NCBI GenBank assembly: GCA_950097015.1
Contig: CATNEN010000011.1
Location: 558,001-622,000 of the forward strand
Direction of reading: 5' to 3'
Source of the DNA: Macrostomum hystrix
Taxonomy: Eukaryota > Animalia > Platyhelminthes
Length of the DNA: 64,000 bases
Shown: positions 9,001 to 47,052 of the stretch, in pieces
How positions within the stretch are numbered: the stretch's first letter is position 1
Layout: each line of letters opens with the position of its first letter
The notes under the pieces: model-generated
Seen by the model: only the letters and a program-made list of their open reading frames with translations
Database searches by the model: none
What the model was told of the DNA's origin: nothing
Made by a program: the position numbers and the translations under genes

Positions 9001-12000
9001 GCTATTTGCGACGGCGACGTCTTCCTACTGCAGCGAGCTGTCGACACAAGCGGACGTCTATGCCATCGTCAGTGCCTACTGGATAGCCGGCGCGGCGATT
9101 TGAGACGAGCCGCCACGGAGGCGCTTGAGAAGCGACGCCGCTGTGACAATGTGGATAATGACGGCGTGGGCGGCGCTGCGGAGGCGCCTAGCGACAACCG
9201 ACCCCAATCGCAGATTGCTGCGCCGTTTGCCCAGGCCGAAGAAGACTTCAATGACGCCGATTTGGTCAAGGCGTCGGCAAATTCGTCGTCCAGTTCAGTC
9301 GTAGCTATTCCGGAATCTGCCCAAGCAAAATCCAACTCTTCGGAAATTTCTACTCCGCCAGATTCCACAGCTGAAAATGCAGAAACTTCTGCTCCGGCAG
9401 ATTCCACGGCTGCAAATGCAGAAACTTCTGCTCCGGCAGATTCCACGGCTGCAAATGCAGAAACTTCTGCTCCGGCAGATTCCACCGCTGCAAATGCAGA
9501 AACTTCTGCTCCGGCAGATTCCACGGCTGCAAATACAGAAACTTCTGCTCCGGCAGATTCCATCGCTGCAAACGTTGAATCTTCTGCTCCGGTGGATTGC
9601 ACTAATGTGGAATCTTCCAAACCAGCTGATTCCGCCGCAAACCCAGAAAATTCTGCTGAGGCAGCTTCCTCTCAGTCTTCCACTATTCCCGCCCGCATTT
9701 CTGCCCTCTCTCCTAATTCTACCGGCCTCCCAGTTCCCCCTGCCGCGTCTTCTCCGTTCGGTTCGCCGACTTCCACGCGTCGATCCAGTCGCAAAGCGGC
9801 GCCGGCTCCGCCGCCTCCGTCGTCTTCCAAACTACCGCAGCCTCAGCTGGCCAGATCTGCTACCTCCGTGTCTGTGGCGTCGGCCAACAGGAAGAAGATG
9901 ACTGTCGATGTTGATCATTATCCGGAAGAGTTCAATCCCTTTAGGTATGATTAGACAGTGCATAAAATGAAATGCTAAAATTACCAGTTTAAAGGTGATG
10001 GGCAAATACAGTAAAGTTAAAGCTTTAGATAAAGTTATTATAATAAGAGGCAGTGCTAGAATGGGATACGGTAAGAGATGAAAAAGAAAGAAATGAGAAA
10101 GAAAACGGGGGTCAGTCACAGAATGGTTAACGCGTTTGCCTCTCGCACCAAGGTCCCTGATCTCAATTCCGCGGCTAGGCGCATTCATTTGGGGTGTAGC
10201 CACGGAGAGAAGGCTTGGGGGCTTGTCGTGCAATTTACGCCCGTGATGGCCAACCTCCAAGGCACAGTGAGAGTGTACACTGCCGGACGATGAGAAGGTC
10301 AGGGTAGATGTTCACACCTAAGCGTATGCCTGCGTACGGTATCAGGGTGCGTGTGTGCTCAGGAGTCAGTGAAATGGGCAGAATTGCCTCCTCGCTAGCT
10401 GCGGGTCCAGTGTCACTAAATGCTGTGCCATTGCCCACAACCCTTCTGCAATTGTTATTATAATATCATTTTTATGAAAATACGATATAGGAGTATTATC
10501 TAAAAATACATTTCTTTCCTGTTGTTATTACCGCTCTCCTTGCCCATTGCGCAGTGATATCTCAGTCCCGTCTGCCGCAAGATCAAAGCCGCCTCCGCGA
10601 CCGCCGCCCGCCACGCGATCGGGCGCGCCTTCGCCGTTCGCCAATGCGACTTATCCGGAAGACCTCAACCCGTTCGGCGAATGGGAAGAGGATCAGTCCG
10701 CAGCTAATCTGGCACAGCAGCAGCAGCATTCCAGACGGTTACCTCCGCAGCGACCGCCAGGTGGGCCGACCGGCTCCGTGGCAGCCAGCGTGTCCCTCCC
10801 GGTCAGCCGCTGCTCATCCATGGAACCGCTGCACCGAGCCGCTAGTCCGGGACCCGGCGGGCCGCTGTTAAAATCCTTTCGAAAAAGTCGCCACGCACCG
10901 CCGCCACCGTCTGAGCAGCAGAAGCAACGGCAGCAACGGCAACAGTCGCCGATGCAAGCATTGAATTCGCACGTTAATCAAAATTCAACGCCAAAATCCG
11001 CTTCAACAGTTGACATTGTATCGTCGGTGCCTGTGTCTGCTCAAGCATCGTAAGTTACCAAAATCTTCAAAACTATTTTCTCTTGATAGAATTTGAAAAG
11101 ATTTGGTCCTTCAAAGGTTTTTCCATTTTTTGTTAAATCACAGATTTACAATTTCCGTTTGGGGATGTTAACAGTAGAAAAACCACGGATGTTTTTAAAT
11201 TTCCACTTTTTCATTTTTCTGTATCTCCTAAAATATTCAAACAATGGCCATGAAAATCCTGAATACGGCCTAAATTTTCAGCTCTATCTGGAACAACTTC
11301 CATAATCACAAAACATCGGCATCGTCTAATTTCCGATGTTTTGTCGTCTTAGTAGCAAATATAACAAACTTAAAAAAATTCTGCTAACAAATTTTAAACA
11401 TGTCGGCAGTCATTGAATATTTTGGATTGATTAAATGATTTTTTTCATTTATCTTTTATCAAGTCATATGGATTTGCCAAAGAGGTTTTATGCAGTGCAA
11501 TCTTTTCCTTGTCACCAGGGACTCCGAGAAGAATTGCTACTGTTTCACATTTATGGATCAAAATCAATTTATTTCTTTGATTCTGGGCTTTATTTCCGGT
11601 TATTTTCCGTTTGGGGATTTAAATTTCCATTTTGCAATTTTAATCCCAAATCGGGTTCCCATCTATCTCGCAGTCCGCAGGACACGCCCTCCGGTAGGCC
11701 CGGGCATCCATTAGCCTCCGATCTGCATCATCGCTCGTCATCGCGACTAAAAGGTCCCGCTCCGCCGCGGCCCAATCAGACAGAGCGCAGGGTCATCGTC
11801 ACCGAGGCTGTGGAAGAATTCGAAGCTCTAGACGCCATCGAGCGCGAGCTGGCTGTTCTGGGCGAGCGTCAGGCCCAGATTGAAAGCCGGGGTCGGGATC
11901 TGTACGACAAGCTAAAGAAAGGTGTGTTGTGTCTGTATGCATGTAATAGTAACAGTAACTCCAGGAGCAATCGTACATGATTTGGTGACACTAGACCTGC

Positions 12001-14080
12001 AGCCATTTAGCTCACTCCTGAGCACAGCACTCAGATACTGTATGCAGGCACACGCTCACACGGGTGTGTACATCTGCCCTGACTTTCTCATCGTCAGGCA
12101 GTGTACCCTTCACTATGAATTGGAGGTTGGCCCTCAATGGCGTAAGTCGCACAATTAGCCCCCAAGCCTTCTCTCCGCCGCTGCGCCCTAAATAAATGTG
12201 GCCTCGCCGCGGAATCTAGCTTAGTGACATTAGTGCGATAGGCAAACCGCTCTGTCACCGACCCCCGGTCTGTGTGCTATTCATCCTTACTTAAATTCAA
12301 TGAGCTAGTAGCCATGTGATTAGAGTTTTGAATTTCTCACCTGAAAATTCGGTGTGTGTAGGCCTGCTTAATGATAGTTTTATCAATATCCCCAGCTGGC
12401 TAAACTACTGCAGTTTGGTTTTTGCATTCGCTAGCAAATTGTTGATTGATATTTAATAAGTAAATCATTATTAATCAATAAAATGCATAATCAGCGAGAC
12501 AATTTTTAGTCTTCCTATTTAACATTTTCTTTTTTTGCCTTGCACATCTCGCCCGCTTTCCTATTCTATTTGCAGCCTACGGTTACGGAACATTGGGATA
12601 CAATGGTAATATAGAGCTTCAATGTTTTATTTTAGATGTACTCTAAGTCGTTAAAACCAAATCTTACCAATATTTTTCCAGTTTCACGTCACTACCGGTG
12701 CACACGTGTAGCATTTATATACATAATAATAGACCTCTGCATAATTGCATCTTAATATAGAATGATTTTCATTCGTTGTTCCAGCTGAGCTCGACCAATC
12801 AGATGCCGAAGAGCCACTACTATTGGAATGGATTAATTTAGTTAACGAACGGAATAGATTGTGTCGCGAAGAGCTCTACCTGTTGAGACGGTGAGACCAA
12901 TACTCAAACATTCTAATTTGAAACGTTATTTTCTTCTAAAAAACTTATTTTTGCAATTTTCTAGATCGGAAGAACGCGAACTAGAATTGCAGCACTCGAG
13001 CATTGAATTCGATTTGCGCCGAGTCATGAGCAAGCAGGGTGGGTTTGGTTTGTTGGAACCGCACGCATAATTATATATTATTATTAAATATATTAATTGT
13101 CAAAGTAATTCCTACCCGGCACAGCTTTAACTATCTCTCAGCGGTTCCAAAAATGGTGTACAGCTGTTTTGTCCATGGACTTGGGCCCTTTCTAGAAAAT
13201 CGGCCATTCCGTTTTGAAGCTATCGCTAAGTAGGCAGTGGATATTTGAAATACGAGGAGTAATTGGTCTTTCTAATTGGTAATTGGAGGTATTTCTAATG
13301 TCTCTAATTGGAACTTTAGACCTCTCTGGCAGAAGTCGGATTTTAAAGTTTATCTACGAGCTATAAATTTGGTCAAATTATTTAAATTTACTAACGTGTA
13401 GTGCTGAATAAATTTGTTTAATTATAAAATGCAGCATCTCAATTATAAATTAACCCACGGAGCTAGTTTGTGCCGCCAAACTTTGCCACTTTCCTAGCAG
13501 GCAGAAGAGTTAGTGAATTCTACAATAATCTACGAGTAGAAATCTATGGGTGCCACACACAACAACGTCAATTTCTACCCAGTTGTTTTCCTGGGCTGCC
13601 ATTCTAACTCTATATTTGATCAGGTTAATTTGTGAAATTAACAGAATCGATTACATTTTAGAGGCCCTTAAAACTGAGTCGGACAAAGAGCTGGAGCGAA
13701 ATCTTCTAGCCCAGCTAACCGAAGTTGTAAACAAGCGGGCCAAGATCATCGATCTCATTGACGCCAGTCAGCGTGAACAGGAGGAGCAGGAGCAGCTCCT
13801 GGCTGCCACTCTGGCCACAGCCAGCGCTTCTGTACACGAAAAAACTACAAATAGCAGCAAGAAGGAAAATAAGAAACTCTTCAAGCTGCATAAGAAAGAG
13901 GAGAAAGACAAGTCTAAAAAGAAATCTAAGCTGGCATCGAAGTTAAAGAAAAAGCCGCCAGCAGAAGATAAAAAATCGGACGAAGAGGCGGATTCCGCTG
14001 AGGCTGAGACGCAGCGTCAGCCGCATCAACGCTTCAAACTGTTTGGCAGCTTGCGGCGGCAAAAACAGAAAGAAAAATAA
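6022..14080 (+). CDS. MICALL: MICAL-like protein (CH domain, partial LIM, two NPF motifs, C-terminal bMERB/DUF3585), ~930 aa
   Basis: Exons 6022-6385, 6991-7115, 8983-9944, 10555-11049, 11674-11921, 12785-12890, 12965-13038, 13662-14080; all GT-AG, phases consistent, total 2793 nt. CH: [38 protein letters not shown]. bMERB: LLLEWINLVNERNRL, ELERNLLAQLTEVVNKR. No monooxygenase domain. Confidence 0.88.
6430..6972. repeat. 33-bp minisatellite, ~16 copies (intron 1 of MICALL)
   Basis: Unit ACCAGATAGAATGTCAGTTACATCATCCAGCTG; produces the spurious ORF 6431..7030. Confidence 0.95.
7771..7984. repeat. 30-bp minisatellite, 7 copies
   Basis: Unit AATCCTATCATTTAGGGGTGTGAGATTGAC, near-identical copies. 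Confidence 0.95.
8588..8830. repeat. Degenerate ~30-35-bp minisatellite
   Basis: Recurring ATCCCATCCCTATGACCAAGTTAAATGATT. Confidence 0.75.
9358..9660 (+). repeat. Coding 39-bp tandem repeat (AETSAPADSTAAN) in MICALL exon 3
   Basis: About 5 near-perfect copies plus degenerate flanks of GCAGAAACTTCTGCTCCGGCAGATTCCACGGCTGCAAAT. Confidence 0.9.
10106..10453 (+). mobile_element. tRNA-headed SINE family B, copy 1
   Basis: Head GGGGGTCAGTCACAGAATGGTTAACGCG...; body AGAAGGCTTGGGGGCTTGTCGTGCAATTTACG shared with copies at 12.0, 33.6 and 62.7 kb; ends CTGCAATT. Confidence 0.75.
11960..12267 (-). mobile_element. SINE family B, copy 2
   Basis: Reverse-complement match to 10106-10453 (CCCCCAAGCCTTCTCTCC, GTGTACATCTGCCCTGAC, TTGGAGGTTGGCC). 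Confidence 0.72.
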
Positions 14081-29082: not shown

Positions 29083-32000
29083 ATGATTAAATTCGACGCC
29101 AGAAAAGATGACAAGGGAAGGCCAAAGATAACTTTCCAAGCTGGTAAAGTCCTTTTTAACTTTTTAACCTTAGACACCTGTTTTATTATAGTTATGGCTC
29201 GTATATGCTAAAAAAAGTAACAAAAGCCATTTTAATGAAACTCTGATCCCTCGCAGCTGATCAAAATCCGCGAGGCAACAGTCGAAAACAATCGGGCGGT
29301 GGAAGAGCTCCGGCTGGTGGGACAGATTCAAAACAACAGCGAGGTCAACAGCGTCGAGCTGGCCCAGCTGCGAAGGCATCCAATGCCGATGATCCGGCCC
29401 TCGGTCAACGAAAGCGCGCCCAGGCGGCAGCAGCGGACGATGCCGGCATCCTGACCGAGACTCAACTGAAAGCCATCCTGCAGTCGGTGGAGAAGCTCAC
29501 ATCAACTGGGGAAAGGGACGTCAGGATCGAAGTTGGTGAGTGTAAAAGGGGATGTCAACCTAGGCTCTAGAATGGATCCCGAGGTCGATCCTCGAACCAA
29601 ACCGAAACCAAGCCACGATCGATTCGGATAGAAACGCCGAGTCGCTTACAGCCGGCTACCATACCAATTAAAGTGCTGGAAGTTTTATGAGCACACGCCT
29701 CCTAAGGGATGCAACACTCGAAAGTTTGGACCATGGAGATTGTCCTGGATTGACTTGACATTAAATCCCCATTTTATGCTATTTGTCCCCGACGGTACCA
29801 AAGGAAGGCTGGGTGAGAGTTCTCGGCGTTTCTAGTCGACTAGATTGACAATCTACTGATTTCAGTCGGTTTGGTTTGAGGATTGACCTTTATCCAGTGT
29901 TAGGCGTGTTACCAAAAAAGTAACGATTATGGTGTTAATGATCGTTACTTTTAATCGTTACTTATATTTTTTGTAACTTTTACCACAAATCTGCAACTAT
30001 TTACGTAAGCACGTTATTATTACGTGTAGCTTTGTTAATCGGTCATCACTCAAATCATATGTTTTAATCTCCAACATTGTCCACTTTTTTAGACTCCGTT
30101 ATCACTCTCACTGATCTTGATTATTTCGGGCTTGGGTTAACCATGAAATCACATGAAGATTTTAGATTAGATTGATAAAGTGAAGTAATCAGAGTAAATT
30201 AACCAACTGCATGTAGTCAGTCTATGGAATGGACCAATAAATATTTCGCGAAATTTGGACTTCGCAACAAAAACAAAAAAACCTTCGAATCAAAAAAATG
30301 GATGCACAATATATCAATGTCAAACAAAGAAATCGAAAGATATAGTTGCTATTTATATAAACTTTACTATTTTTTATACTAGTATTTCGAAAAATACACA
30401 ATTTTTAATGCTGCAAAATAAATAATTTACAATGCTGCTAATTGCATATTTTGTTTCGGAACTTGGAAACAAAAACAGGTACGCGAAAAAGTAGCGTTGC
30501 AAAATAGTAACGATCATTATCAAATTGGTAACTAGTAACGAGAAACGCTCCCAACATTCCCTATATCCTCAAACCTCCTACCATCTATCTGTTACCTCTG
30601 ATCTCTGCCAGCTGATTATTGATCACAGCTCTGATAGCATTGTAGAATTATAGGCATGTTCTTAGTAATTAAACTCGTCATCTCCACTCCAGACGGGCAG
30701 CACAATCGCGTGAAGATTGAAGGCCGCTTGCACCAGCCCTGGGCCGTGTCGGACGATTCAGCCGAAGCCTCGAAGAAGCCATTGAAACCGCCGCCAGCAT
30801 CGTCAACAGCAAATCATCAGCGAGAGGCGGCAAATTCAAAGAGAACCGCCGGCCAGGCGTCTACAAAATCTGAGTCGCTAGATGAGAAAATGCAGCGACT
30901 GATAACTGAGAACATGGACAAGCTGAGCGAAGACGCTCTCGTAGATCTTCTGTCCAAGGTCTACGTTGAAGAGAAACAGCGGATGCTGGAACCGGACGAC
31001 AAAGCGGACTGGGATGACGCAAAAGCAGCTGCGTCTACTGAGCAGCCTCAAAGACAGCTCAGGGTAGGTGAAGCCTTTAGCTTTGTCGGAGTGCAATTAT
31101 TTCTACCTGAAATGAGGTAGTTTAGATTTTCATAATTTAGGATGACCATACTTTTTACAAACTACTTTAAGTAGAATTATAACCATACACTATTTCTCCC
31201 CATTATCGTTAGCACGTGACCAAAAATGTCCATCAGATTTAGCCTACCAAGTTTTTGTTCATTCTTTTTTGTCGCAGAACGGTCAGCCCGCTCCGAAGGC
31301 CGTCGAACAGGCCTCGCCAACGGTTGCCAAGGCCACTACGGCGGCAGCCTCTCTACCCGCAGCTGCCGCGGCGCCACAGGCAGTTCCACTGACCAAAGCG
31401 GAGCAGATGAAGCTCAAATGGGCCCAGGAGTTGGCCGAGCAGCAGGGCCTCTCCGGCTACGATCCATGGGGACGTCCGGGGGCCGGCGCACCGCCATTGT
31501 CCTCGTCTGGTCGGTTTCAGCCCCAGCAACAGCAGCAGCAGCAGTCTGCTAGGTAGCCGTCCAATTTATCTTGCAGAATTTCCTTAATTTGTCGCATACC
31601 ATCATGTCCGACAGGTCACAATTAAATAGACCTGACTGTTAGCACCCGGTCTAACAGGTTAGTGTCTTCGTCTAAAAGGCTAGAATATTCATCTAAGCAT
31701 CTTCATTAAAGATGTTATCTTCATATAGCAAGTTAGCATCTTCGACTAACAGGTTAGCATCTTCGACTAACAGGTTAGCATCTTCGACTAACAGGTTAGC
31801 ATCTTCGACTAACAGGTTAGCATCTTCGACTAACAGGTTAGCATCTTCGACTTACAGGTTAGCATCTTCATATCACAGGTTTGTATCTTCATTTAACAGG
31901 TTAGTATCTTGATAGAACAGGTTAGCATCTTCGTCTAACAGGTGTCCGTGAACCTGTCTTAACTAATTTATTAAGTGACGTCAAATAGTCAATGCACCTG

Positions 32001-35000
32001 CAACGCCGTTGCAGACCGCCGCAGCCGCCTCAAAGACGGCCAAGTCTGCCTGAGCAGCAGGCACAGAGTCAGCAACAGCAGCAGCAGCCCCAGCAGCTGG
32101 ACCTGGCCTCCTCCCATCAGCCAGCCGCAATTCGGAGCTCCTTCCTCACGGGCGAAGCCGCCCCGGACGCCAGCCGATTCGATGCGGCCAAGGAGGCGGC
32201 TAGACGACAGTGGCTGGCCGACCTGGAGAGTCAGCGCGAAGCTCAGCGACGCGCCAAGCAGAACGGAGAGCCGCCTCAGGCAAAGTTCTGGTCCACGCAG
32301 AAGCAGCAGCTGCCGGCACAGCCGCAGCCGCCACTTCAGCAGCCGCCAGTATCTACGGGATTCGAGCGCGGCCGAGGCGGCATCTTCGGCGGCGGCCCGG
32401 TTGACGAGGAGCGACGCCGGCGCGAGCTGGAATATCAGGCGGCGCTGATGGCACAGGCCGAGGAGCGCCGAGTCCAGCGGGCCCAGGAGCGAGTTAGAGC
32501 CGCGATGGAGGACGCAGAGGCTGAAAGAAGGTTTCGCGAAACACAACAGCCGCAAGCTCAGCAGCAGCACACAAAGGTAGACCGCATGCTATTAAAGCAG
32601 TCTAAAAGGTTGAGCTCATACCTTTAACAGTAGAAATAACCGCGTAATTTTTCCCCAAGGGAAAGAACACGGGGGGTATTTCAAATACTCACTTCCTACT
32701 TCACGATAGCTCCGAAAACAAACGACCGATTTTCGTGAAAGTCCACCATTTGGATCAAAATTACCGCCCTTTACGACGAACTAACATTCAAAGCCGTCCT
32801 ATGTTAGCATCGTCGAGATATTCAGCAATTCTTGTCGAAGACCCTGTTGACAAGGGCAACTAACATTGCTCTGTATAAACCTGTGTGGATATTTGGAATA
32901 CCCCGAGATCTTACTACTGTTAAGCTATCACAAGCTCGTACAAGTCTGTAAAAGACGTATAGGAGGTTTTATAGATCTAACGGGTGACACTCCTACCAGT
33001 TTAATAACCTGCGCTTGCACCAGTAATCAGGTGTTCTGTCCCTTAGACTGGGATGGCTCTTGCATCCACCCAATTTTCTACACCAACCCATTTTCAAGCT
33101 TGGCGTCTTACTTAAGGACACAAACCTCTTTGGTCAGAAGTCAGAAGATCTATGAGCGTAATGAATCGTTTCACTTCGCAGGCTGTGCAGCCGGCCCCAT
33201 ATGCGACCAGCGCCGCATCTCCACGGCCAGCCGCTCCGGTTGATCTGGCTCAGTCGCTGCTGCTTGCAGAGGAAACTTCCAAGTTAGTTGCTTCTTTTAG
33301 TTTGGGATTCAAAGTTTCTGAAGGTAACAGCTTATGGGTTGAGTGCTTCAGTCAATGCTCCATCCAACTACATAACCCAGGCTGCACAAGGCCCTCGGCC
33401 GCATTGAGAAACTGGAAGCTGGCGGTCACGACACCAGCAACCTGAAGCGGAACCTGCTCGCCACCTACGGCAGTTCACCGACACTGATGAAAATTCTTCA
33501 ATCTGCCGGCATCGGCAGGAAGGCGCCCTCGCCGCAGCCACCGATTTTGCCTCAACAATCGCCCTCGCCGCCGTCGCCGCCGCCACAAGAAACAAGCTAT
33601 CGACATCTTCGGGGGGTGAGTGACATATTGGTCAAACGCGTTTGCCTCTTGCACCAAGGTCCCTGAGCTCGATAATGTCCCGTGGCGAGGCCACATTCAT
33701 TTGGGGCTCAGCCGCGGAGAGAAGGCTTGGGGGCTTGTCGTGCAATTTACGTCCTTGAGGGCCAACCTCCAAGGCACAGTGAGAGTGTACACTGCCTGAC
33801 GACGAGAAAGTCAGGGCAGATGTACACACCCGTATGATCGTGTGCCTGCGTACGGTATCTGTGTGCGTGTGTGCTCAGGAGTCAGCGAAATGGGCAGAAT
33901 TGCCTCCTCGCTGGCTGCGAGTCTAATGTCACCAAGTGATGTGCCGTTGGCCGCAGCCCTCCTGCAATTATTAACTTTTTAACTGTTGACCCTTCATATT
34001 ATTATATTGTAACGTCATCTTTAACATCATGAGCAGCAGCAGCCAGTGGTGCCTTCCCATCGTCACGTGATCGTTGAGCCAGACGAAATTCCCGGCTTAA
34101 ACGGAGATGATAATGACGACGTGGACCGGGAAAATCGTCGACGTCGAAGTCCGTCGCCGCCGCAGTCATCGTCGCGTCGACGACATCGTCGAGTTCTGAG
34201 CGATGAACGCCTAAGAGAGGAGCGCCAGAATCAGAGACTGAAGCAGCAGCAGCAACAACAGCAGCAGAAACCAAATATGCGAACTAGACGACTTTCTGAG
34301 TCACGTGAAGACCCTAGACAGCAGCAGCAGCAGCAGCGGCAGCCAGCAAGGCAACAGCAGCACCAGAAACAGGCAAAGCCAAGCCAGAAGCCGGTGCCAG
34401 TCAGCGAACGACCTCCGTGGGGCTCGCGGGCCGCCACTCAGCTCAAGAAGCCGCCAAAGGTGGCGCCTCAGAAGCAGCAGCAGCAGCAACAACTGCAGCG
34501 ACAGCAACAGCAGCAGCTTCCAATTCCGACTTCAGACTCAAAAAGGCCTCCTCCGTCGACTTATCACCGGGTGGAGGCAAATGAACAGCAGCCACGTCAG
34601 CCAAGGCAGCAGCAGCAGCAGCAGCAGCAGCCACACTATCGTACATATGAGCTGCATTCGGTGAGTTCACCATTAGCTGCGTGGCAGTGAATTTCAGGTT
34701 TCTGTGCGGTCATGTACTACTCAATAGGAAACTCCCATTTTAACATATTGTATAAAAAACAGTTCTATCGACCCTTCCCGTCTGTGTTTTATAGCTCTGA
34801 TCAAATACTTTTTAATGTAAAAAGCTAAATTATCCTAGGATTTTAGGATTAGGATCCTTGGATTCAGAACCTCTCGGGGAGTTTCTCGAAATGTTAGAAA
34901 TACTTTTTAGCAAATGTGAACCTAATTTTTAAAGTACATTCTTAATGTACTGGTTAATGAGACAATGCTTCGCAAAAAAACTAATTTTTTTCATTATTTT

Positions 35001-38000
35001 ACATTACATGATTTGCACGTATTAATGCATGCTTGATACATGTTTTTGCACGTGCGTAGTATCCCGTTTTCTAAACATTATCCCAATAAACTTTAGGTCA
35101 ACGTTAAAAATCATTGCCTAAAACCAAATATTATTGGAACTATCTTTCCTTCTTCTAATTTTTTTAGTTTTCCATTTTTTAGAAAAATTGAAAATAAGAA
35201 TAACAATCGGATTTTCACGCAAATAGTATATAATCATGTTAAGATAAAGAACGAGCCCGTAGTATGATTACTTTTTTAACTGTGTTAGTTAGGATTTATT
35301 TAATTTTTAATTTCAGAAAAATGTTATTCTTTTATTTCTCCGGATTTTCACATGCTGAGTGATAAACAACACAGAAAGCAATATACAAAGCTTACACACA
35401 TGGAAAGTACAGAATATTTATTATGCAATTGGATGCAAAGCGAAAAACATGTAAATCTACAGCTAAGTTTTATTAATTATAACGAATATAGCTATTTACT
35501 ATAAACCTAAGATTATTAAATGTCGCATCATAATAACAAAAACTTACAAGTTATTATATTAAATAGGCTCTGAATCAAAACATCTGTAGTAGTGAACAAA
35601 TTTATATCACTATAAATAGGTAGCAGAGCATAATTTAAGTTTAATTTAATGTAATTGTGACAGTGTCGTATGTTATAGAAAGGAAATATTTATAAGCATT
35701 TGCTAATCTAATTGTCTATATTCGATTGCAAGAAAAGCGATGTGTACTTATACTTCTGTAAAACTACCTAACAAGAACAAAAAAACAAAAATAGCTGGTT
35801 TGACCTTGAAAGCGATAATTTTACAATTAAGAAATTATTTTAGAATTTCTAAGGACACGGTTTACACTCCGAAAAAACGAGCTCGTTCATGCATTAAAGG
35901 TTCATATTTACTCCCCGCTTCGATGCTCTTCATATTTCTCTTAAGTCCAAGACCGAAAATCTCGTAGTTTACGAATTTTCAAGAAAAAAACAATAAAGCT
36001 TTTTGTGCGCAAGAAGGACTAGAGAAAAGAAGTATAATATTTTTTCCTCAATTTGTTTTTTATTCATATTTTTTATAAAAATAAATATAGTGAGACTGTT
36101 TAATTACTGGAAATTGATTCTTAATCTAACGCTTAATTATGATTTGTCGAAATTTAAAACAAAAACTTACGATTTTTACATTGTAAGTGTTCATGCAAAT
36201 TAACAAAAATGACATCTTTTTGATAATGAACAATATTAATTGTTTCATTAAAGTAAAATTTAAATTTGCCTGTTTGCATTGCAACCAAAGTTTACTTAAT
36301 CAGCGTGAATGTTTTTTACTGCCGCAATAATTTCTCTGATGCTTTCCAAAGTAAACACGCGGTTGCTATGGCCGCCTAGAGTGACTAATACAGCAATACT
36401 GAACAAACTGATCAAGCCAATCAGAATACGGGAATCTGGTGTCGCGGTGTGCCGACCAAATCGTCGTCCAGAGTGAGCAACACCATGAAGGAGAAGAAAA
36501 GGCTCATGGCTGACAGAAAGTGCCAGATGTCGTGCACATCGTAGAAGCCAACCAATAGACAGCGCTGATTCAGAGCCCTTGACTCGGCGGGGCTGTTGGC
36601 CCAATTGCTGGGCCGTTGCATGAAGAAGTACAGACCGGCAGCCCAGGACACGCACGAGGCTGCCACGAACAATGTGGGCAGCAGTCTGATTCTCTCGCCG
36701 CTTCTTACCTTCATGACAACGTAGAAGGCAATGTACATCAGCAGGTTGACTAGGAAGATGTACAACAGGAAGCTGTTGAAGTCCTGCGGTTGGCGAACGG
36801 CTCCGTAGATTGCTATGGCCCAGTTGATGAGGTTGGCGGTCACCAGAATCACCATGCGGTCTTTGTACATCGGCTTGAAACACCCGATACCCTGACTAGT
36901 GATGAGGAGGTAGAACCGTCTGACTAGTCCCACGTTCACCTTCCAGTGTCCCATGTAGTAGACTTCGCCTGCGACAGTGAAAATTCGGATTATTGAATTT
37001 AAATACAGTGGGGTAGAAAGAAGAGATTGGGGGTAGAAAGAAGAGATTTGGCGTAGAAAGAAGAGAGTGGGGTAGAAAGAAGAGAATGGGGGTAGAAAGA
37101 AGAGAGTGGGGTAGAAAGAAGAGAATGGGGGTAGAAAGAAGAGAGTGGGGGTAGAAAGAAAAGAGTGGGGGTAGAAAGAAGAGAGCAGGGAGAAAATTGT
37201 AGAATATGCTAATCTGCCAATTATTACCTACTGCTCACTATCACGCAGCTGAATTGAGGTCAGCAATATCATGAACACTTTAAACTGCTCACGAAATCTG
37301 AGGCGCCAAAGTTTTTCTTGCTCAGTTGAGCACAGAAATTAAAGTCTGTCTTCTTTCTCGGCTTTCTCTCCTCTCAGTTTAGCCAAACAATATATACCGC
37401 TCCGAGATGGAGCAAGTTTAATACTTGCGATCCCGCACTCGACTATGCTCCACTGAGCACAGTTCTGATGAGGCGCTTCGAGTGGCTGATGCTCCAAGAG
37501 CTATTCCTGCAGCTTTTTAAAGCTTCTTTCCCTTATTTCTTATGGCATCTATAAATAGACAGTATATACACAATATGCTGTATATAAACCTATTGCTTGC
37601 TTTGTCGCCTTTATCGCTTTACCGAGTACATCACCATGTCTCATCTCTCCCCTGTCTCATCCCTCCCCTGTCTCATCTCTCCCCTGTCTCATCTCTCCCC
37701 TGTCTCATCTCTCCCCTGTCTCATCTCTCCCCTGTATCATCTCTCCCGTGTCTCATCTCTCCCCTGTCTCATCTCTCCCCTGTCTCATCTCTCCCCTGTC
37801 TCATCTCTCCGCTGTCTCATCTCTCCCCTGTATCATCTCTCCCGTGTCTCATCTCTCCCCTGTCTCATCTCTCCCCTGTCTCATCTCTCCCCTGTATCAT
37901 CTCTCCCGTGTCTCATCTCTCCGCTGTCTCATCTCTCCGCTGTCTCATCTCTCCGCTGTCTCATCTCTCCGCTGTCTCATCTCTCCCCTGTATCATCTCT

Positions 38001-41000
38001 CCCCTGTCTCATCTCTCCCCTGTCTCATCTCTCCCCTGTATCATCTCTCCGCTGTCTCATCTCTCCGCTGTCTCATCTCTCCCCTGTATCATCTCTCCCC
38101 TGTCTCATCTCTCCCCTGTCTCATCTCTCCCCTGTATCATCTCTCCGCTGTCTCATCTCTCCGCTGTCTCATCTCTCACCTGTATCATCTCTCCCGTGTC
38201 TCATCTCTCCCCTGTCTCATCTCTCCGCTGTCTCATCTCTCCGCTGTCTCATCTCCCCCCTGTCTCATCTCTCCCGTGTCTCATCTCTCCGCTGTCTCAT
38301 CTCTCCGCTGTCTCATCTCTCCCCTGTATCATCTCTCCCCTGTCTCATCTCTCCCCTGTCTCATCTCTCCCCTGTATCATCTCTCCGCTGTCTCATCTCT
38401 CCGCTGTCTCATCTCTCCCCTGTATCATCTCTCCCCTGTCTCATCTCTCCCCTGTCTCATCTCTCCCCTGTATCATCTCTCCGCTGTCTCATCTCTCCGC
38501 TGTCTCATCTCTCACCTGTATCATCTCTCCCGTGTCTCATCTCTCCCGTGTCTCATCTCTCCCCTGTCTCATCTCTCCCCTGTCTCATCTCTCCCCTGTA
38601 TCATCTCTCCCGTGTCTCATCTCTCCGCTGTCTCATCTCTCCGCTGTCTCATCTCTCCCCTGTATCATCTCTCCCCTGTCTCATCTCTCCCCTGTCTCAT
38701 CTCTCCCCTGTATCATCTCTCCGCTGTCTCATCTCTCCGCTGTCTCATCTCTCCCCTGTATCATCTCTCCCCTGTCTCATCTCTCCCCTGTCTCATCTCT
38801 CCCCTGTATCATCTCTCCGCTGTCTCATCTCTCCGCTGTCTCATCTCTCACCTGTATCATCTCTCCCGTGTCTCATCTCTCCCCTGTCTCATCTCTCCGC
38901 TGTCTCATCTCTCCGCTGTCTCATCTCCCCCCTGTCTCATCTCTGCCTGTCTTGTCTTATCTCTCTTCTGTCTTATATTTTACTTGTCTCATCTCTCGAT
39001 CACATGTCTCATCTCTCCTACATCTTATATCTCACTTGTCTTATCTCTCCCCTGTCTTATCTCTCCCCTTGTTTCATCTCCATCTGTCTCATCTCTCCCC
39101 TTGTCTACTCTCACCTTTGTCTTATCTCTCACCTACTTAATCTCTCTACAGTCAATGCGGCATGTTGATACCGTTTTAATTCTCTCTTTAGCCATTAAGT
39201 AAAGTAAGGTTGCCAACCCCTTCTTATTAATTAACTTCAGCCTTTTATAGAAGACTGTTATATACTCGTATATTCGTGCAAGCACGATAAAGCTTTACAC
39301 AAGCATTGCTAAACCTTCTGTGAGAGCTCCCCAAAATCAGAATCGCCAACTTTGTCACCATTGTGAAAGGTAATCAGGAAGGAAGCTAGATTCAAAGTCG
39401 AGAACGGATACACTGAGCCTTCTATTCTCCCCTTCAATGGCATAGAGTGACTCGCAATACACCGTGTCGGTTCCTTTTTAAAATATGCAAGAAAAATCTG
39501 AGAGAGAAATTCAACATCGATAAATTCAACTTATTTTCTGTTCGCCTAAGAAAAGTAGTTTTTTAACTCATAAAATCTACTTGCCAGGGTTAGGAAGAGT
39601 AATTTTTCAGACTACAGATATTTTATTGATCTAAAAAACTAGCCAACCCTGTTTATTGGAGACATTCAACTATTAGTAAAGTCCTTGTGCTTCTTTGGCA
39701 CAAGAAATGAATTTTTTGAAGCCAGAAATTAGCTTAGAGACTAAATAACGAAGGAACGGAGAAAGAGAGTTAGAGCTCAGAGAGGCGAGTCGAAAATACC
39801 AAAAATTGAAAATTTGTTTAGCATTATGAGTGGTTCTAAAAAATCTATAGTTCTATACCAGAGCGGGAGTGAGCACCTCAGTGCACTGACTGGTAAGTAC
39901 AATGGGGAGGTGGAAGAGACAGCGAGTGACTCAAACGAGTCCCCACTGACAACAAGTGCTGATCAAATATGTTTCGTCAAAAAAAGTTGTATAAGATCCT
40001 TCGAATTCAGGGAAATTTCTATTCTATGAAAAATGGCAATCGGAAACTGTTTTAAGGATTAATCGGATCCAATCTGTCATAAACGATTTCTTAAGTACCC
40101 CCAGTCTGGTTGGGTCACGTATCTTGTGTGTGTGCGAAGTCTCTTAGAAAATGGTTCTGCTCTCCTACCTTTTTCTTTGGAATTTTTTTTATAACCTAAA
40201 TGTGCTTGCTATTTTATTTTTTCACTTTTAAATCTAAAACACGAATGACACAACAAATAATGAGTACAGTGGTCTAGACTATAATTGATGGAGCTTTTTT
40301 CAATAATTCTGCTAATCGGTTGTCTCAGAGGGACCTCATGGCTCGTTTCCAACTTGTACTTTTATATTTCTCTCTCTGGCTTCATCCAAGCACAATTTTC
40401 GCTAAATTCTACAAAATTCTCCAATTATGACCATCTCAAGTGGAACTCTGAGAAATATATATCACCAACCAAAACTTTCACTATTTCTGTGATTTTCATA
40501 TTGATATAAATTATAGCTAACTTAGTCGGGCAAAATCTCAATTAGAGACCTTTAGATTTAATAAGCTTAAACTAATGCGCTCAAGAAAACGTCAAAAGTA
40601 CTAATCTCACCTGTCAAAAAGAGGCTGGACAGGATGAAAAATATGGTAAAAGCGGCCCAGAAGAACGTAGTACCATAGACTACGCCAACCACGCTGACGA
40701 AGATAACGATGGCCATTGCCATGCAAGCCACGTGCGCCGAAGCGTTGATGTCCGGGTGCCTGGTCTGGTAGATCTTCAGCATGCACAGCACTGCCAGCAC
40801 GTACATATAAGCCGTGTCGAACTGGAAGTTTGAGTAGCTCGGACAGACATGATAGCAGCCGGACATGACGCCCTCCATGATCAGCGCAATGCCCATGGCG
40901 TAGAAGATACCAAAGTGCTGCGGAATGCCTCGAAGGCGATCCTCAGCGTCCGCCTCGCCGTTGTCAGGGGCTACCGCAGCCGCAGCCGCTGCCGCATTCC

Positions 41001-44000
41001 TGCGCTGCTTGTCTAGCAAGTCTCGACGCCTTGTTAAACCGAGAAACAGCAGGCCTAGAAGGACGTAGCCGACATTTGAGAAGACATTGTTGAATGCTGA
41101 GATCACACCAAGCGGGTGGGCGCAGTAGAAGTTGTAGTAGCAGATGTCCTGATTGCCGCTGATTCGCAGGATCTGCTGGTAGGTGATGACCAGCTGCACC
41201 ACAGGCAGGCCGTAGAATATGCTGACGATGATCAGGTACCAATAGTACAGGCGGTACTTATTGCGTAGCACAGCCGGCCGCTTCTGGCACAGGTCCGACA
41301 CAAACAGACTGTGCGGCTTCCCGTCGTCGTCTTCGAAGCCGTCATTATTGGTGTCGACGAATCGGTGTCGCAGACTGCTGGTTTTGCGATCGACATCCTC
41401 GCTGCCGCTGCCGACATCGTCGGTGTCGCCGTCCAAATCAGCGTCAGTTTCAGAGCGTGGATGCTGCAATGAGACTCGATCGCCAACAGCTTCAGTCGGC
41501 TTGCCATCAGCCGTGCTGCCGTAGGTGCCCGCGGCTGGGGTCTCAGCTGGCGCAGCCTTGCTCGAGGATGGCGCCTTGTCATTGAGCCGCTGTCTGCTGC
41601 CTTCCGCGGTGCCGTCGCCGCTTCGACCGCTTTCCAGGCACGGGCAGCAGGGTCCGATTTTGGCGCACGCCGCTTGATCTGCTTCGCCGGTGAACTTCCA
41701 GTGCACGAGCAGAATGATGAGCGCCACGAGGTAAAATGCGACGAAGAAGGCGATGGCGCCGAACACCGGTAGAAAATACTGGCCGCTCTCCAGCGACTGC
41801 TTCACGATGAAAGTGAACGACTTGCTGGTGAGTGACGCCTCTCCGGTGGTGCCTCGAACCTCCGTTGCATTGGCCAGAGCGTCTTCAACTGCCCTGGCGT
41901 CCATGTTGCTAGTGGCTGGTACTCCTGGCGCTTTGGGCTGCAGATCCTTCAGCCGGGTGAAGCTGCAGTGCTGCTGGGATGGCTTCATCACGAAGACGAT
42001 GTAGAAGTTTTCGTCCTCGAAATCTTGCCGACCAACCGTGATCTCCGCCTTGGTAGACATTGTCTGGTAGACTCCGGTAAACTCGACGTTGCGCACCAGA
42101 TCGTAGACTGGGCAGCCAACAGACTGGGCGCTGACAATCATGCAGGCTGTGTCATTCGACTCAACGACGATTGACAGGTGTCGCACCCCAGGTGGAAACG
42201 CCACCCGGTAGTACTTGGGACGCGAGGGCGTCAGGGACTCGCGGTAATGCTGGCCAACACGAAGCAGGAAAGTCTGCACCAGAGTCACATTCAGCAGGAA
42301 CGGTACCGAGCGAGCGCTGGCGCTTGACACGTCAATGTAGATGGTCTGGTTCTTGTCCACGGCGCCCTTTGATGCTCGCTCCACCGGGCAGAGGGTCCTG
42401 GCAACTTCGCTGTAGTAGTACTCGTTTTCGAGAATTTCGGGCACTTGGAAGGACAGAATCGAGCGCTGCTGCCTGATGACAAACAGAACTGGATAATCGC
42501 GTCTAGCGGTGGAGCTCACGACATGCACACGAACAGCCTGAGTAACGTTGGCCTTCTCAACGAAGCTAAACACGTACAAATAGTTGATTGAGCTGCTCAC
42601 ATCGCCGCGGTAAACTTCGCCAAATCGGCCGCTGACCTGCTTCACCGCGGACAGCATTTGACAGTTAACTGTCAATGCCAATGCCGCCAAAAATGTCACC
42701 GTGAGACACATGCCGGGCAACATTGTTTTGTTGTTTTTATCTGCTTCACGAGTCGGTCCAGGTAGCTAAGAGATTCATTCTATTATAGAATTTTCTGGCA
42801 TTCAACTTATGCGTTGTTGTTTTCCGCTTTTCCGCCCCGCTGTTGCTTGTCGCTTGTGTTCTTATTTGCCGGTCAGACCACCTGAATTCGAGCACGATTG
42901 AGCACAATAAACCTTGAGTTTCCAGCGCTATATTGTTGTGGGCCCGGAAAATTCTTTCTCTATCTCGACTGTACTGAGCTGCACGCACGCCAAGTGTAAT
43001 TAATTATGGAAATTATGTTGGGCCACGGGACTCGGAGTGGTCTAAAAGTTATTTTTATATGTCAGCTACGGCTCAGTGGCTTGTTATATCATTTATTAAC
43101 TACCCCTTACCGCTGGTTGGCCGGAACACTCCTCTCACCGTCACCGCCCTATCCTTACAATCAATTCTGCCTTGCCTCTCTGTCTGTCCCTTACATTGGC
43201 CTTAAGAACCAACCCCTCCTACACAATGCACCAAGTAGCGTTGAGAATATAGTGCTGGATTGAGGCAAACGACTCAATTGGAGGGTTGGGTTAGGGTTGG
43301 TGTGCGCATGACCCGTGCTGATGTGAAGAGAGAGAGAGAATGCAGAAACGGGCAGCTATCTAGAGTGCCATTTTCGTCTGGTTGTTCAATAATTCTATAT
43401 TTTTAATCCCTCTATATGGCTTTAGAGATGGAAGTGGCTGACTCCATCTCATCAGGCCATCAACTCGTCCTATCCATGCCTCTATCCACTTCCATACCCT
43501 ATACTCATCCTAGAGCTCATTCCAGACTTACGCCTATTATAATGCGATTCTTATATTAAGCCTTTTAACGTTGGTTAGTTAAATCCTCAGTTTACTGAAA
43601 TAGGCGCCTTCAAGATACAGACATCCTATCTGATTGGTGGCTTTAGTAATCGTACTAATCCTATAGTTAACTGTTAGGTCTAATCGATTATCAACTAAGT
43701 AATTAAGGAAAACACGAGTAGACTTGTTTACTCAAAACTGTCCTACATCCAGCATTTTACCTGGAATTGATGAGACGATTGCAAGCCACGTGACAGATCC
43801 AATTTTATGAATGAATAATGTGGTTACACTAGGGTGCCAAAGCACGGTAGCTGTAGGGTTTTTAGATACGCCGTCTTTTTTAGTTAGTTTTTTTACAATT
43901 TTTAGGATACATTCTCTAGAGACTATTTTATAATATGCAATTAGTCTCAAAAGGTTCCGTTCAACATCAATATCAATAGATGCAGGCAAGGAAAAAGTGC

Positions 44001-47000
44001 ACAAATTCCATTTTTACTAGTTCTTACTCTCTCGAGATCTCTTCTTAAGCCTTTCGCGAAAAATACTATCTGAACGTGTTGGAAATTCCTAGCCTAGTTA
44101 GCCAGTCCGAACTTCCTCCACACCGCATGCCACACTGACAAATAAGAAGTCATCTTCTGCAATTCTCTGTGGATTTCAACTCTAAAAGTGCATTCCTGGT
44201 TGGCCTTATAGTCCGAGGATTAGCTATCAACTACACCTACAACAGTTCGGTTAACTATCCTAGGCCCCCATTTATTATATGCACATGGCTGTTAATTTTG
44301 AAAATCCGAAAGTAATGCCTCCATTGCTACAACAGTTGTTTTAGGCAACAATTTCGAAATTTAGCAATACTCGTAGACAACATTTTCGAAACTATAAAAT
44401 CGACAAATATACGAGCACTTGAGCACTGCGCAGCCCTGAAGGGCGAGGAACGTGCCAATTGAACGTTTATTTCGTGTCCCGGCCGATTGCATAAATCGTT
44501 TTACTGTCTGTGGCATTATCCTATTCACAAAGCGTTGAAGAGAAAAAACAGAAATAAAGACGCAATAATATACCATTAATACCCATGCTTTAAGGGCGTT
44601 AATGGAAAATCAAAGGGCGCCGTTAGGCGCCCGAGGATTTTTCAAAGACGCCCGCAAAGCTTGGGTATCAATTTTATTGTACCATAGACGTTTTTGCCAA
44701 AGCTATACTTTCAGAGTCAGAGACGGGGGTGTGGGGCAGAGCCCCCACTTCGGGGTGCCATAGACATTTTAGCCTCAGTAAGCCATTCCTATTGGTCGAT
44801 GCCTTTTTGCGGGCGGTTAATGGCTATTAACTGCCCGCAAGAAAATTACCGAGCATTAATTCATCTATGGCCATTAACGGGCAAGACTTTCTGCCGGTTG
44901 GTGGGCAAAAATATCATGGTACACTGCTATTAATATAGTAATATATGTGTAATATGTGTAATTGATTACACGTGCCCCAATAGCCGACAGCACAGCCGCA
45001 GCTATTGCGCGGCGCATCTGAAGGCTGCGTACGGCTGTTCAGTCCATGGACTGGGGAGACGCTACGCTCAATTACTCCAGCTAATGCTGATACCTACTTA
45101 ACAGCTTAGTGAACTCAAGCAATGTATATTTTAGTTTTTTTGCTAAAGGACACAAAGTGTTCCAGTGGAGTCGGGAATCGAACCCCCACTTTCAATTCGT
45201 GAGTTCGACTAACCTCTGGCGCCAACCCCGCTGGCGTGTTTTTACTGGCGTGTTGGTCTGAGACACTTAAAAAGACGTAAAGTACAGACTACGTCACAAT
45301 GTACCCGACGCGCACAATGTACACGCACACGTAATTCAGTGGTTTGCAAAATGTACTAATACTTTAAACATTGCTACAATAAGCCAAACAAGATATAGAA
45401 TTCATTTCTCAAAAATTTGTCACCAATTTTTCCCAAATAATTTTATTAAGCCATAGCTGTGCCAGTGGGATCAAAAAATTCTATATTTCATTCCTTCATG
45501 TTTTATGTTCATCTTCTCGGCTCTAGCGTAGTTTGAGCTAATTTTCTAATAGAGTTTTTATTGGCCTAGCAGCATCGGCCAAATGTAGCTTTATTGCGTC
45601 TCTCTTTTGGACGAGGCAAAGTTATTGAATTATCCAATTAGTCGCCAATTCGTGGCTTAGAATGTCAGGAGAACACGGATTTTATAAAAATAAGGTAACC
45701 ACATTGCGATCTAATACAAATTATCAATACTGGTCCCGTTGAAAGTGACAGCCTTTTGTTGCTATATTTAGAAAATGGCGGGGAACCCCTTTTCAAACCA
45801 CCCGAGCCACATTGCGCGTGAACTAATGTAGCCAATGGAATTTTGACAACATTTTAGCCTACTGACAATACTCAACCTCGCCCTGTCCATCGACTAGACG
45901 CGTCGCGATTCGCCGTCGCCGCCTAGGGCCACGCCGCCGCAGCCGGCAGCTGCCACCGTCGCCGCTGTCGCCTTCGAAGACGCCGGCTACGACTACGCTG
46001 ACGGCTACGGCTACGGCCAGACAGACGGCGGACTGATCCGAACCTCGGCATTTCTCAACCCGGCCGCGGCGGGCAAACCGCTGCCCATCAGCCGAGAGAC
46101 CACCGCGCGCGAACTGGCCCGCCGTGCCTATATGCGGGGCCTGAATCCGTCTCACTATGGCGTTGCTATGGAAAATTATGAGGACGAAATGGCGCCAGCT
46201 GAGCTGGTTGCTAGGCATCCAGGTGTGCCGCCGGGGGTTGGACGACCCACCAAGGGTGGCAAGGTGAGCCAATGGGGTCAATGGGATCAGTGGTGTTTGC
46301 AGAGCAGGGTTTTGGGGTGAGCATTTCTATATTTAGAGCTTGAATATGAATGACGTATAACTGTCAACAACTGTTTTTCCGATAATGTGATATAACCAGG
46401 TCACATGACATTGTTTCTAAAAATTGCATTTCTAAAAGTAAATCAGTGATGACTAATTCCCAAAAAAGATTAATATCCATATCTTCGATTTCCCTGAACT
46501 ATTACTTTAAGTAGCTCGTTGAGCATGCTGTATGATTTTAATGCACTCTACAAACCCTGTACAGATTTCATAAGGCCGTCAGCCGAGAAAAATATGTAAT
46601 GTGAATACGATGCAAAAAAAATTCTCCTCAAAAACCGCTGATTGTGTCCACAATGAGGCTCGTAAAAGGCTAAAATTGCACTATAGAGAATATATCGAGT
46701 TTCTTGCATTAAAACTATAATGGGACCACTCAGAACTTCTGACCTCTCGGCTTAGGAGTTCGAGGCTATGGCCAGTGGACTTGTAAAACAAGTTGTGTGC
46801 TGTGAAAATATGTTTACTACTGCAATCCTTGAAGGTTGCTAAGCTCGTCTTATGAAGTTATCTTTATAATTATCTACTTTGCTCTAATCAAATTCCTCAT
46901 CAATTGCTTCCCAGGACCCCATATTTCATCCGGGACTGGTGAAGGATTCGCCGACTTCGCGACAGGACGCCATCATGCTACAGCTGTCAACAATTCGCCA

Positions 47001-47052
47001 GGGCCTGCTAGACAAACAGAAAGAGATTGAAACATCATTGTCAGTCAGTTAA
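29083..47052 (+). CDS. CCDC66: CCDC66-like centriolar-satellite/ciliary coiled-coil protein, ~1000 aa
   Basis: Exons 29083-29143, 29257-29535, 30693-31063, 31278-31552, 32015-32576, 33182-33282, 33381-33615, 34043-34660 (tandem acceptors 34034-34043), 45898-46263, 46915-47052; phases consistent, 3006 nt. Motifs LTETQLKAILQSV, YDPWGRPGAGAP, RELEYQAALMAQAEERR and C-terminal QDAIMLQLSTIRQGLLDKQKEIETSL match recalled CCDC66 motifs. Confidence 0.8.
29582..29889. mobile_element. MITE with ~22-bp TIRs
   Basis: AGGTCGATCCTCGAACCAAACC ... GGTTTGGTTTGAGGATTGACCT, plus inner IR AGAAACGCCGAG/CTCGGCGTTTCT. Confidence 0.7.
29895..30558. mobile_element. Degenerate non-autonomous DNA element with GTAAC/GTTAC subterminal repeats (hAT-like)
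   Basis: CAGTGTTAGGCGTGTTAC... versus ...GTAACGAGAAACGCTCCCAACATT; clustered GTAACG/CGTTAC at both ends. Confidence 0.5.
31640..31945. repeat. 21-bp minisatellite
   Basis: Unit AACAGGTTAGCATCTTCGACT; 5-6 perfect copies plus degenerate flanks. Confidence 0.9.
33611..33970 (+). mobile_element. SINE family B, copy 3; forms most of CCDC66-like intron 7
   Basis: Aligns end to end with 10106-10453; its head GGGGGGTGAGTGAC contains the splice donor at 33616. Confidence 0.8.
36421..42723 (-). CDS. SIDT: SID-1 transmembrane family protein (SIDT1/2, CHUP-1-like), ~886 aa
   Basis: Two exons, 42723-40611 and 36968-36421 (phase-1 GT-AG intron), 2661 nt. Signal peptide; CYYNFYCAHP..AFNNVFSNVGY, SGCYHVCPSYSNFQFDT, FYDVHDIWHFLSA, LLTLDDDL. 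Confidence 0.95.
37007..37190. repeat. 19-20-bp purine-rich minisatellite
   Basis: Unit GGGGTAGAAAGAAGAGAGT, ~9 copies next to the SIDT acceptor. Confidence 0.9.
37636..39150. repeat. 16-bp pyrimidine-rich satellite (~82 core units to 38945, degenerate tail)
   Basis: Unit CTGT(C/A)TCATCTCTCC(C/G); produces three spurious ~500-aa ORFs. Confidence 0.97.
44757..44871. mobile_element. Short CCATAGA-ended MITE-like element
   Basis: GCCATAGAC...TCTATGGC with inner hairpin GCGGGCGGTTAAT..ATTAACTGCCCGC. Confidence 0.45.
44973..45217 (-). mobile_element. SINE family A copy
   Basis: Reverse complement has GGTTCGATTCC, TGCTTGAGTTCACTAAGCTGTTAAG and CCCCAGTCCATGGACTGAACAGCC...CAGATGCGCCGCGCAATAGCTGCGGC. 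Confidence 0.78.

Follow-up and report, generated by a model that had tools for sequence, protein, structure and literature searches.

The stretch of DNA analysed here (the window) comprises 64,000 nucleotides (nt) of the genome of the flatworm Macrostomum hystrix and corresponds to positions 558001-622000 of contig 11. Genome-wide searches spanned the M. hystrix assembly of 220,453,370 bases in 42 contigs. The window contains a CCDC66-like gene on its plus strand, and one predicted intron of this gene, lying between coding exons at 33381-33615 and 34034-34660, is occupied by a copy of a short interspersed element (SINE) at 33612-33973. The best reading of this arrangement, to which we assign a probability of about 0.7, is that the intron was gained when the SINE inserted into a coding exon.

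Homology searches of the host gene were made exon by exon. The upstream coding exon (33381-33615, plus strand, codons from 33382) ends with ..YRHLRG, and its frame was fixed by homology to the Macrostomum lignano protein A0A1I8GV75 (55% over 56 amino acids) and to a paralogue on contig 7; its acceptor, ..cccag/G (a slash marks the border between exon and intron here and below), matches that of the paralogue in position and phase. The downstream coding exon (34034-34660, plus strand) is an open frame of 627 nt, is Q-rich, contains the motifs RRVLSDE and ERPPWG and ends with ..TCG/GTGAGT; its RRVLSDE motif aligns to the exon of the paralogue. Two further exons on the plus strand encode the conserved C-terminal region. 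The first of these (46033-46239) was found by tblastn with CCDC66-type proteins of a nemertean, oyster, mussel and Capitella (E 1e-7 to 1e-12) and is 77% identical to the contig-7 paralogue; the second (46909-47049), which is the last exon, was found by tblastn with four spiralian proteins (E about 1e-8 to 1e-9). The top library matches of the host gene were CCDC66 domain-containing proteins of M. lignano, Capitella and Potamilus (E 3e-8 to 7e-4), with the M. lignano protein as the closest database relative. The Pfam domain CCDC66 (PF15236) was matched with E = 0.0018 and 18.5 bits, which is under its cutoff of 29.9. A full HMMER search with the exon of the CCDC66 domain returned six distant matches, the best of them 41% identical, and no close orthologue in the collection. 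A word search with residues 1-75 of the downstream exon returned no relatives among proteins of 0.55-1.75 times the query length. Scans of metagenomes with the upstream exon and with the pattern of the reconstructed empty site gave no match, as expected, and are uninformative.

The SINE copy at 33612-33973 (plus strand, sense to the gene) belongs to an older, GTGAGT-headed subfamily of a family that had been called family B. Within the window it matched a second copy at 10107-10457 (plus strand, head GGGGGTCAGTCAC) over its full length with 85% identity, and also matched, with 84% identity, positions 12003-12247 of a third copy on the minus strand (12003-12270, head GGGGGTCGGTGAC). A first look at the whole genome gave 2967 candidates, and the 40 that were scored were 88-92% identical to 33612-33973. 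Genome-wide, the family is put at no fewer than about 3000 copies. These alignments, which extend over the full length of the element, bear out the claim of the initial annotation that the intron is almost wholly a SINE of family B. The anatomy of the family was read from 23 full-length copies together with their flanks. The body is about 356 base pairs (bp) long, has no long open reading frame (ORF), begins with the head GGGGGTCGGTGGC (also written GGGGGTCGGTGGCAGAGCGG; the copy at 33612 reads GGGGGTGAGTGAC) and carries an (ATT)n tail. In the other copies these tails are 2-41 nt long and sit between the body and the target-site duplication (TSD). The TSDs measure 12-15 bp, directly adjoin the head and the tail, and match at 11/13 positions or better in 17 of the 22 other full-length copies. 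The family thus shows features expected of SINEs, being short, non-coding and of high copy number, with a simple-repeat tail and TSDs of variable length abutting both ends. A-box-like (GTGGCAGAGCGG) and B-box-like (GTTCGATTCC) sequences are visible in the head of the consensus; a search of the head for a tRNA with ARAGORN and the Rfam tRNA model gave no match. The family may be tRNA-derived. For the ends of the element, which had been left to a family consensus, SINE base 1 was placed at 33612 and the end of the body at 33973. From the consensus of the 22 other full-length copies, which are mostly young, the copy at 33612-33973 diverges by 7.3%, and from the consensus of the older GTGAGT subfamily by 5.6%. 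It has the older-subfamily state at 13 of the 14 positions that are diagnostic between the older and the young consensus. Dense clusters of the head motif GGGGGTCAGTGAC, with spacings of 30-250 bp, were also observed on contig 3 (13413033-13414846) and contig 2 (1309434-1310390), which suggests satellite-like arrays with SINE head sequence.

The predicted 5' splice site of the intron, GTGAGT at 33616-33621 (plus strand), matches GTRAGT at 6/6 positions, leaves the exon in phase 0 and corresponds to SINE bases 5-10, with the donor GT itself (33616-33617) at bases 5-6. The upstream exon ends with ..CTT CGG GGG immediately before this GTGAGT. Its last four bases (33612-33615), i.e. the last base of CGG and the entire GGG codon, are SINE-derived, and the alignment of the heads agrees with the initial annotation on both the position of the donor and the origin of the GGG codon. 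Neither the upstream exon nor the first 80 nt of the element contained another 6/6 match to GTRAGT; the three GTs within the upstream exon match at 2-3/6 positions only. Genome-wide, about 1900 head motifs were counted overall, with the variants GTGAGT in 701, GTCGGT in 952 and GTCAGT in 259 cases, and the same patterns read backwards, which served as control, gave 10-34 matches. About half of 30 sampled GTGAGT heads are carried by older family-B copies. Since the copy has the older state at nearly all diagnostic positions (13/14) and the GTGAGT head is common in the genome, the donor was almost certainly already present in the element at the time of insertion.

At the 3' end, the first AGs after the tail of the element stand in a GAG-CAG-CAG-CAG run (34031-34042, plus strand), which offers four phase-0 candidates for the 3' splice site: GAG at 34031-34033 and then three CAG up to 34042. 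Each of them keeps the downstream frame, and the phase-0 donor combined with any of the four would give an in-frame mRNA encoding ..YRHLRG, three to zero glutamines and then PVVP. Such NAGNAG acceptors may vary the number of glutamines. The acceptor had been described initially as weak. A low pyrimidine content was indeed found (a fraction of 0.50-0.60 before the candidate acceptors), but it is not unusual for this gene, whose four other measured acceptors have fractions of 0.50-0.73; in three of these four the content is no higher than at the candidates. TAAC-like branch-point candidates can be read from the sequence in the tail of the SINE and in the right copy of the TSD. About 398 of the 418-427 bases of the predicted intron are SINE body and tail, and the element occupies the intron from its first base; outside the SINE, the intron holds only the right copy of the TSD and 11-20 bases that were formerly exonic. 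The frame-keeping splice sites lend indirect support to removal of the element by splicing.

Imperfect direct repeats flank the insert, as the initial annotation had claimed. The core repeats, CGACATCTTC at 33601-33610 and CGTCATCTTT at 34013-34022, match at 8/10 positions and lengthen to 13 nt, TATCGACATCTTC and TAACGTCATCTTT, which match at 10/13. The left TSD copy (33598-33610, plus strand) is still coding and ends 1 nt before the SINE head, as in other copies of the family, while the right copy (34010-34022, plus strand) is now intronic in the predicted splice. The body of the SINE is separated from the right copy by a degenerate A/T-rich tail (33974-34009, plus strand) ending with ATTATTATATTG, where other copies have (ATT)n tails. 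The right copy is followed by former exon sequence (34023-34033, plus strand; ..AA CAT CAT GAG), which is in frame with both exons once the insert is removed and now forms the predicted 3' end of the intron. As a null for the TSD, mismatched pairs of flank and tail were drawn from the 23 copies of the family and searched identically; a match of at least 10/13 was reached by 3.4% of 506 pairs (P = 0.034). When position 33610 was joined to 34023, the resulting sequence, ..TAT CGA CAT CTT CAA CAT CAT GAG CAG CAG CAG CCA.., was open, in frame, stop-free and GT-free. This agrees with the open frame ..YRHL-QHHE-QQQPVVP.. that had been proposed for a collapse with the left repeat copy. The pre-insertion site would have read TATCGACATCTT(C/T)(A/G)ACATCATGAGCAG; since it is without any GT, the sequence so reconstructed could not itself have been an intron. 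The insertion measures 412 nt and the shortest predicted intron, 33616-34033, measures 418 nt. Neither length is divisible by three, so that collapse and splice keep the frame independently of one another; the probability that both would do so by chance is about 1/9. A 30-mer of the left TSD and the right flank was used to look for an empty allele or haplotig in the assembly; it matched at the right junction alone, with two mismatches, and no empty allele was found.

The same flanks bear on the alternative that an older intron stood at this site and was lost in the paralogue, and that the SINE landed in this intron and replaced or masked its donor, the 10/13 repeat being due to chance. Nothing intronic lies 5' of the element, the GTs of the upstream exon reaching 3/6 at best, and the non-body sequence 3' of the SINE, at most about 60 nt, resembles a tail and a TSD. 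The TSD copy is followed by AACATC, which is exon-like and not a donor, and removal of the insert leaves an open frame, which would not be expected of an insertion into an intron (a chance of 1/3, plus the absence of stops). This alternative can draw on the abundance of SINEs in introns of the M. hystrix genome, on the chance probability of about 3% for the TSD match and on the fact that the paralogues differ in another intron too, so that turnover occurs. With no 5' intron sequence and a GT-free ancestral sequence, an older intron at the site nevertheless appears very improbable.

The contig-7 paralogue was found in a genome search with the upstream exon, which led to a second locus, 53% identical, in an open frame of 211 codons. 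The locus at 30656-47049 of the window is duplicated at contig 7:8334000-8353999 (gene on the minus strand), including an antisense SID-1-like gene nested in the large intron downstream. Because the exons of the two loci are 44-85% identical at the protein level, the contig-7 locus is, on this comparison, an old segmental or whole-genome duplicate in which the nested arrangement has been kept. In position and phase, the preceding intron of one copy agrees to the nucleotide with that of the other (..AA/GT.. and ..AG/G CTG..). In the paralogue, a single exon covers both sides of the SINE: its residues 37-100 align with the upstream exon and its residues 115-174 with the downstream exon (RRVLSDE), and there is no interruption between them. 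Since both flanks are encoded in one exon there, the SINE intron is, as between these two loci, private to the contig-11 gene. A second genomic copy of the downstream exon was sought in the assembly and none was found. The M. lignano protein is continuous over the stretch of the SINE (..GHDTSNL..SAGL....RRVLSDE..); being a protein, it is silent on introns.

These alignments also speak to the gene model itself, which was made by eye and from homology only, in a region of low complexity (P- and Q-rich). If it were wrong, the two flanking frames would come from separate transcripts or rely on different splice sites, and the SINE would be intergenic or intronic filler. However, a single exon of the paralogue aligns with both frames, as does a single M. 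lignano protein, and no alternative donor was found; an error of this kind seems the least probable of the explanations considered.

Further 3', the paralogue contains an intron that is private to it (CAG/GTCAGT ... catag/GAC; contig 7:8343198-8343528, minus strand), 331 nt long, at a point where the window exon 34034-34660 is continuous. Intron turnover in the CCDC66-like gene is therefore real, as far as the two predicted gene structures go. This private intron contains a 65-bp antisense fragment that resembles SINE 3' domains and is repeated elsewhere, while the rest of it is unique in the genome, and it is bordered by the near-repeat CGAAGGCGTC / CGAAGCGTC. It was considered as a second SINE-made intron, but no such claim is made, since only 65 bp are SINE-like and the rest is unique.

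Two tandem repeats were also observed in introns of the window gene. A 21-bp unit (aacaggttagcatcttcgact) is repeated in tandem about ten times at 31712-31940, within the intron that follows the exon ending at 31554 and precedes the one starting near 32014. A long tandem repeat at 37542-39200, in which three plus-strand frames are open, is located in the large intron, close to the nested SID-1 gene. It shows a strong skew of C over G (GC skew of -0.43 at 38001-40000) and has a weak counterpart at the paralogous contig-7 locus (1073-1315 of the reverse complement).

Decay of the three downstream exon frames (975 nt in all) was simulated at the SINE's own rates of substitution and indels. With 7.3% substitutions and 2 indels per 362 nt, the frames stayed open in 0.06% of the runs; at about half the SINE rates they stayed open in 2%, and at about a quarter in 13%. 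The actual frames are open and conserved, which is rarely the outcome of simulated neutral decay; this argues, indirectly, for selection on the downstream exons after the insertion and hence for a removal of the element from the transcript. The simulation bears on the main alternative, a gene-breaking insertion that is unspliced or poorly spliced. The protein would then be truncated 17 codons into the element, or the gene would be a decaying duplicate backed by the contig-7 copy, and the downstream exons would be dead or part of another transcript. A back-up paralogue does exist, the acceptor is weak and read-through of the upstream frame stops after 17 codons (ORF 33487-33666), yet the element is old (5.6-7.3% diverged) and 975 nt of downstream frames have stayed open and conserved, with a neutral probability of 0.0006-0.02. 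A perfect GTGAGT in phase 0, faced by four candidate acceptors that all keep the frame, likewise stands against an unspliced insertion, and we regard this alternative as unlikely.

Gain of the intron by insertion of the SINE would have proceeded as follows. An older GTGAGT-headed SINE of the family with a body of about 356 bp would have been retroposed into a long coding exon of the CCDC66-like gene, entering the middle of the exon in the sense direction. The landing site would have been a low-complexity linker between two conserved motifs, of which about 13 bp were duplicated. Bases 5-10 of the element would have supplied a consensus 5' splice site, and the tail of the element, an A/T-rich (ATT)n stretch containing TAAC-like candidates for a branch point, would have come to lie just upstream of in-frame CAG (glutamine) codons. 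With a donor in the head and an A/T-rich tail beside in-frame CAG codons, the insert was probably spliceable from the outset. The new intron would run from 33616 to 34033, 34036, 34039 or 34042, and its removal would take out the element, one copy of the TSD and 11-20 old exon bases. Five bases, 33611 (G) and four of the SINE, would stay behind in the exon, and the protein would have changed from about ..YRHL-QHHE-QQQ.. to ..YRHL-RG-Q(0-3)...

Several observations weigh against this course of events. The TSD is imperfect, with 3/13 mismatches, and a degenerate tail of 36 nt separates the SINE body from the right TSD copy; since the tails of other old SINE copies reach 41 nt, a tail of this length is within the range of the family. 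The acceptor is without a strong pyrimidine tract, and no close relative was found in the protein collections or metagenomes searched. The paralogue, without an outgroup, shows only that the two copies differ, and the intron may have been lost there. As intron turnover occurs in the gene, the paralogue alone cannot polarise the change, whereas the anatomy of the element does polarise it. The initial annotation had proposed an intron gained by SINE insertion, with a donor from the element and an acceptor recruited from exonic CAG codons, and this proposal is supported by the donor, the TSD, the reconstructed frame, the paralogue and the downstream exons.

Among 57 head-bearing SINE copies that were screened for long open frames on both sides, only the copy at 33612-33973 qualified. 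A copy on contig 38 (about 31721871-31722709) was considered as a second one splitting an exon and was rejected, its flanks being tandem arrays of the SINE's own TG-rich segment. At this place, a tandem array of about 800 bp, composed of the TG-rich internal segment, lies beside a 5'-truncated copy and mimics long ORFs. With 1 of 57 copies lying between open frames, the SINE family, as judged from this screen, is not an introner in the usual sense. The introners described by Gozashti et al. 2022 (PMC9860276) form families that generate introns at large scale, and those that have been characterised bear hallmarks of DNA transposons. The present case resembles them in that a mobile element entered an exon and is, by prediction, spliced out again, with splice sites that are borne by the element or made with the TSD. 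Introners, however, have many near-identical copies that are introns, and the characterised ones have TSDs of 3-9 bp and terminal inverted repeats, whereas the element here is a retroposed SINE.

Closer counterparts are found among SINEs. In the passage of Sela et al. 2007 (PMC2394776) that mentions it, the intron of rice catalase A (CatA) is cited as a coding intron made by a SINE. As far as the case is described there, it is similar to the present one in that an exonic SINE is removed as a new spliceosomal intron (here by prediction) that related genes do not have; the host is a plant in that case and an animal, a flatworm, in this one. The same authors reported four intronizations of Alu elements (SS18L1, CWF19L1, PDZD7 and C14orf111), all of them alternative and all in exons of the 3' untranslated region, and anticipated that such events would be rarer in coding sequence (Sela et al. 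2007, PMC2394776). As in these human cases, a sense-oriented SINE in an exon provides the 5' splice site of the new intron, and, as in SS18L1, the donor lies in the SINE (an Alu there) and the acceptor comes from elsewhere; in SS18L1 the pyrimidine tract also comes from elsewhere. Unlike the human Alu introns, which are retained alternative introns in untranslated last exons, the predicted intron lies in coding sequence and its removal is needed for the frame. Whereas the donor in SS18L1 required three later mutations, the donor here was already part of the subfamily sequence. It is conceivable, though doubtful, that SINEs of M. hystrix are a recurrent, retroposon-type source of coding introns ('retro-introners'). 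This case would then have many counterparts, and an animal genome would still be gaining introns at a measurable rate. If so, the GTGAGT subfamily, with its approximately 700 heads, may be pre-adapted to this role by its 5' consensus donor and by a U-rich tail able to recruit any exonic AG nearby.

The origin of new spliceosomal introns is a long-standing question. To our knowledge, few intron gains with a source that is still recognisable have been documented in animals, and most of them lie in untranslated exons. The route from SINE to intron is already known and is seldom documented in animals; the present case adds a coding-exon example, in which the ends of the element, the TSD and the ancestral frame are still legible within the coding exon. 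The donor would have been ready-made in the head of the SINE and the acceptor borrowed from glutamine codons, and the paralogue provides an intron-free comparison. RNA-seq and Iso-Seq of M. hystrix have been generated and two sister genomes have been published (PMC10468722), so that the predicted intron is directly testable; the M. hystrix genome paper (Wiberg et al. 2023, PMC10468722) left the repeat content to later work. If further SINE-made introns in this genome hold, Macrostomum could serve as an animal system for the gain of introns from retroposons.

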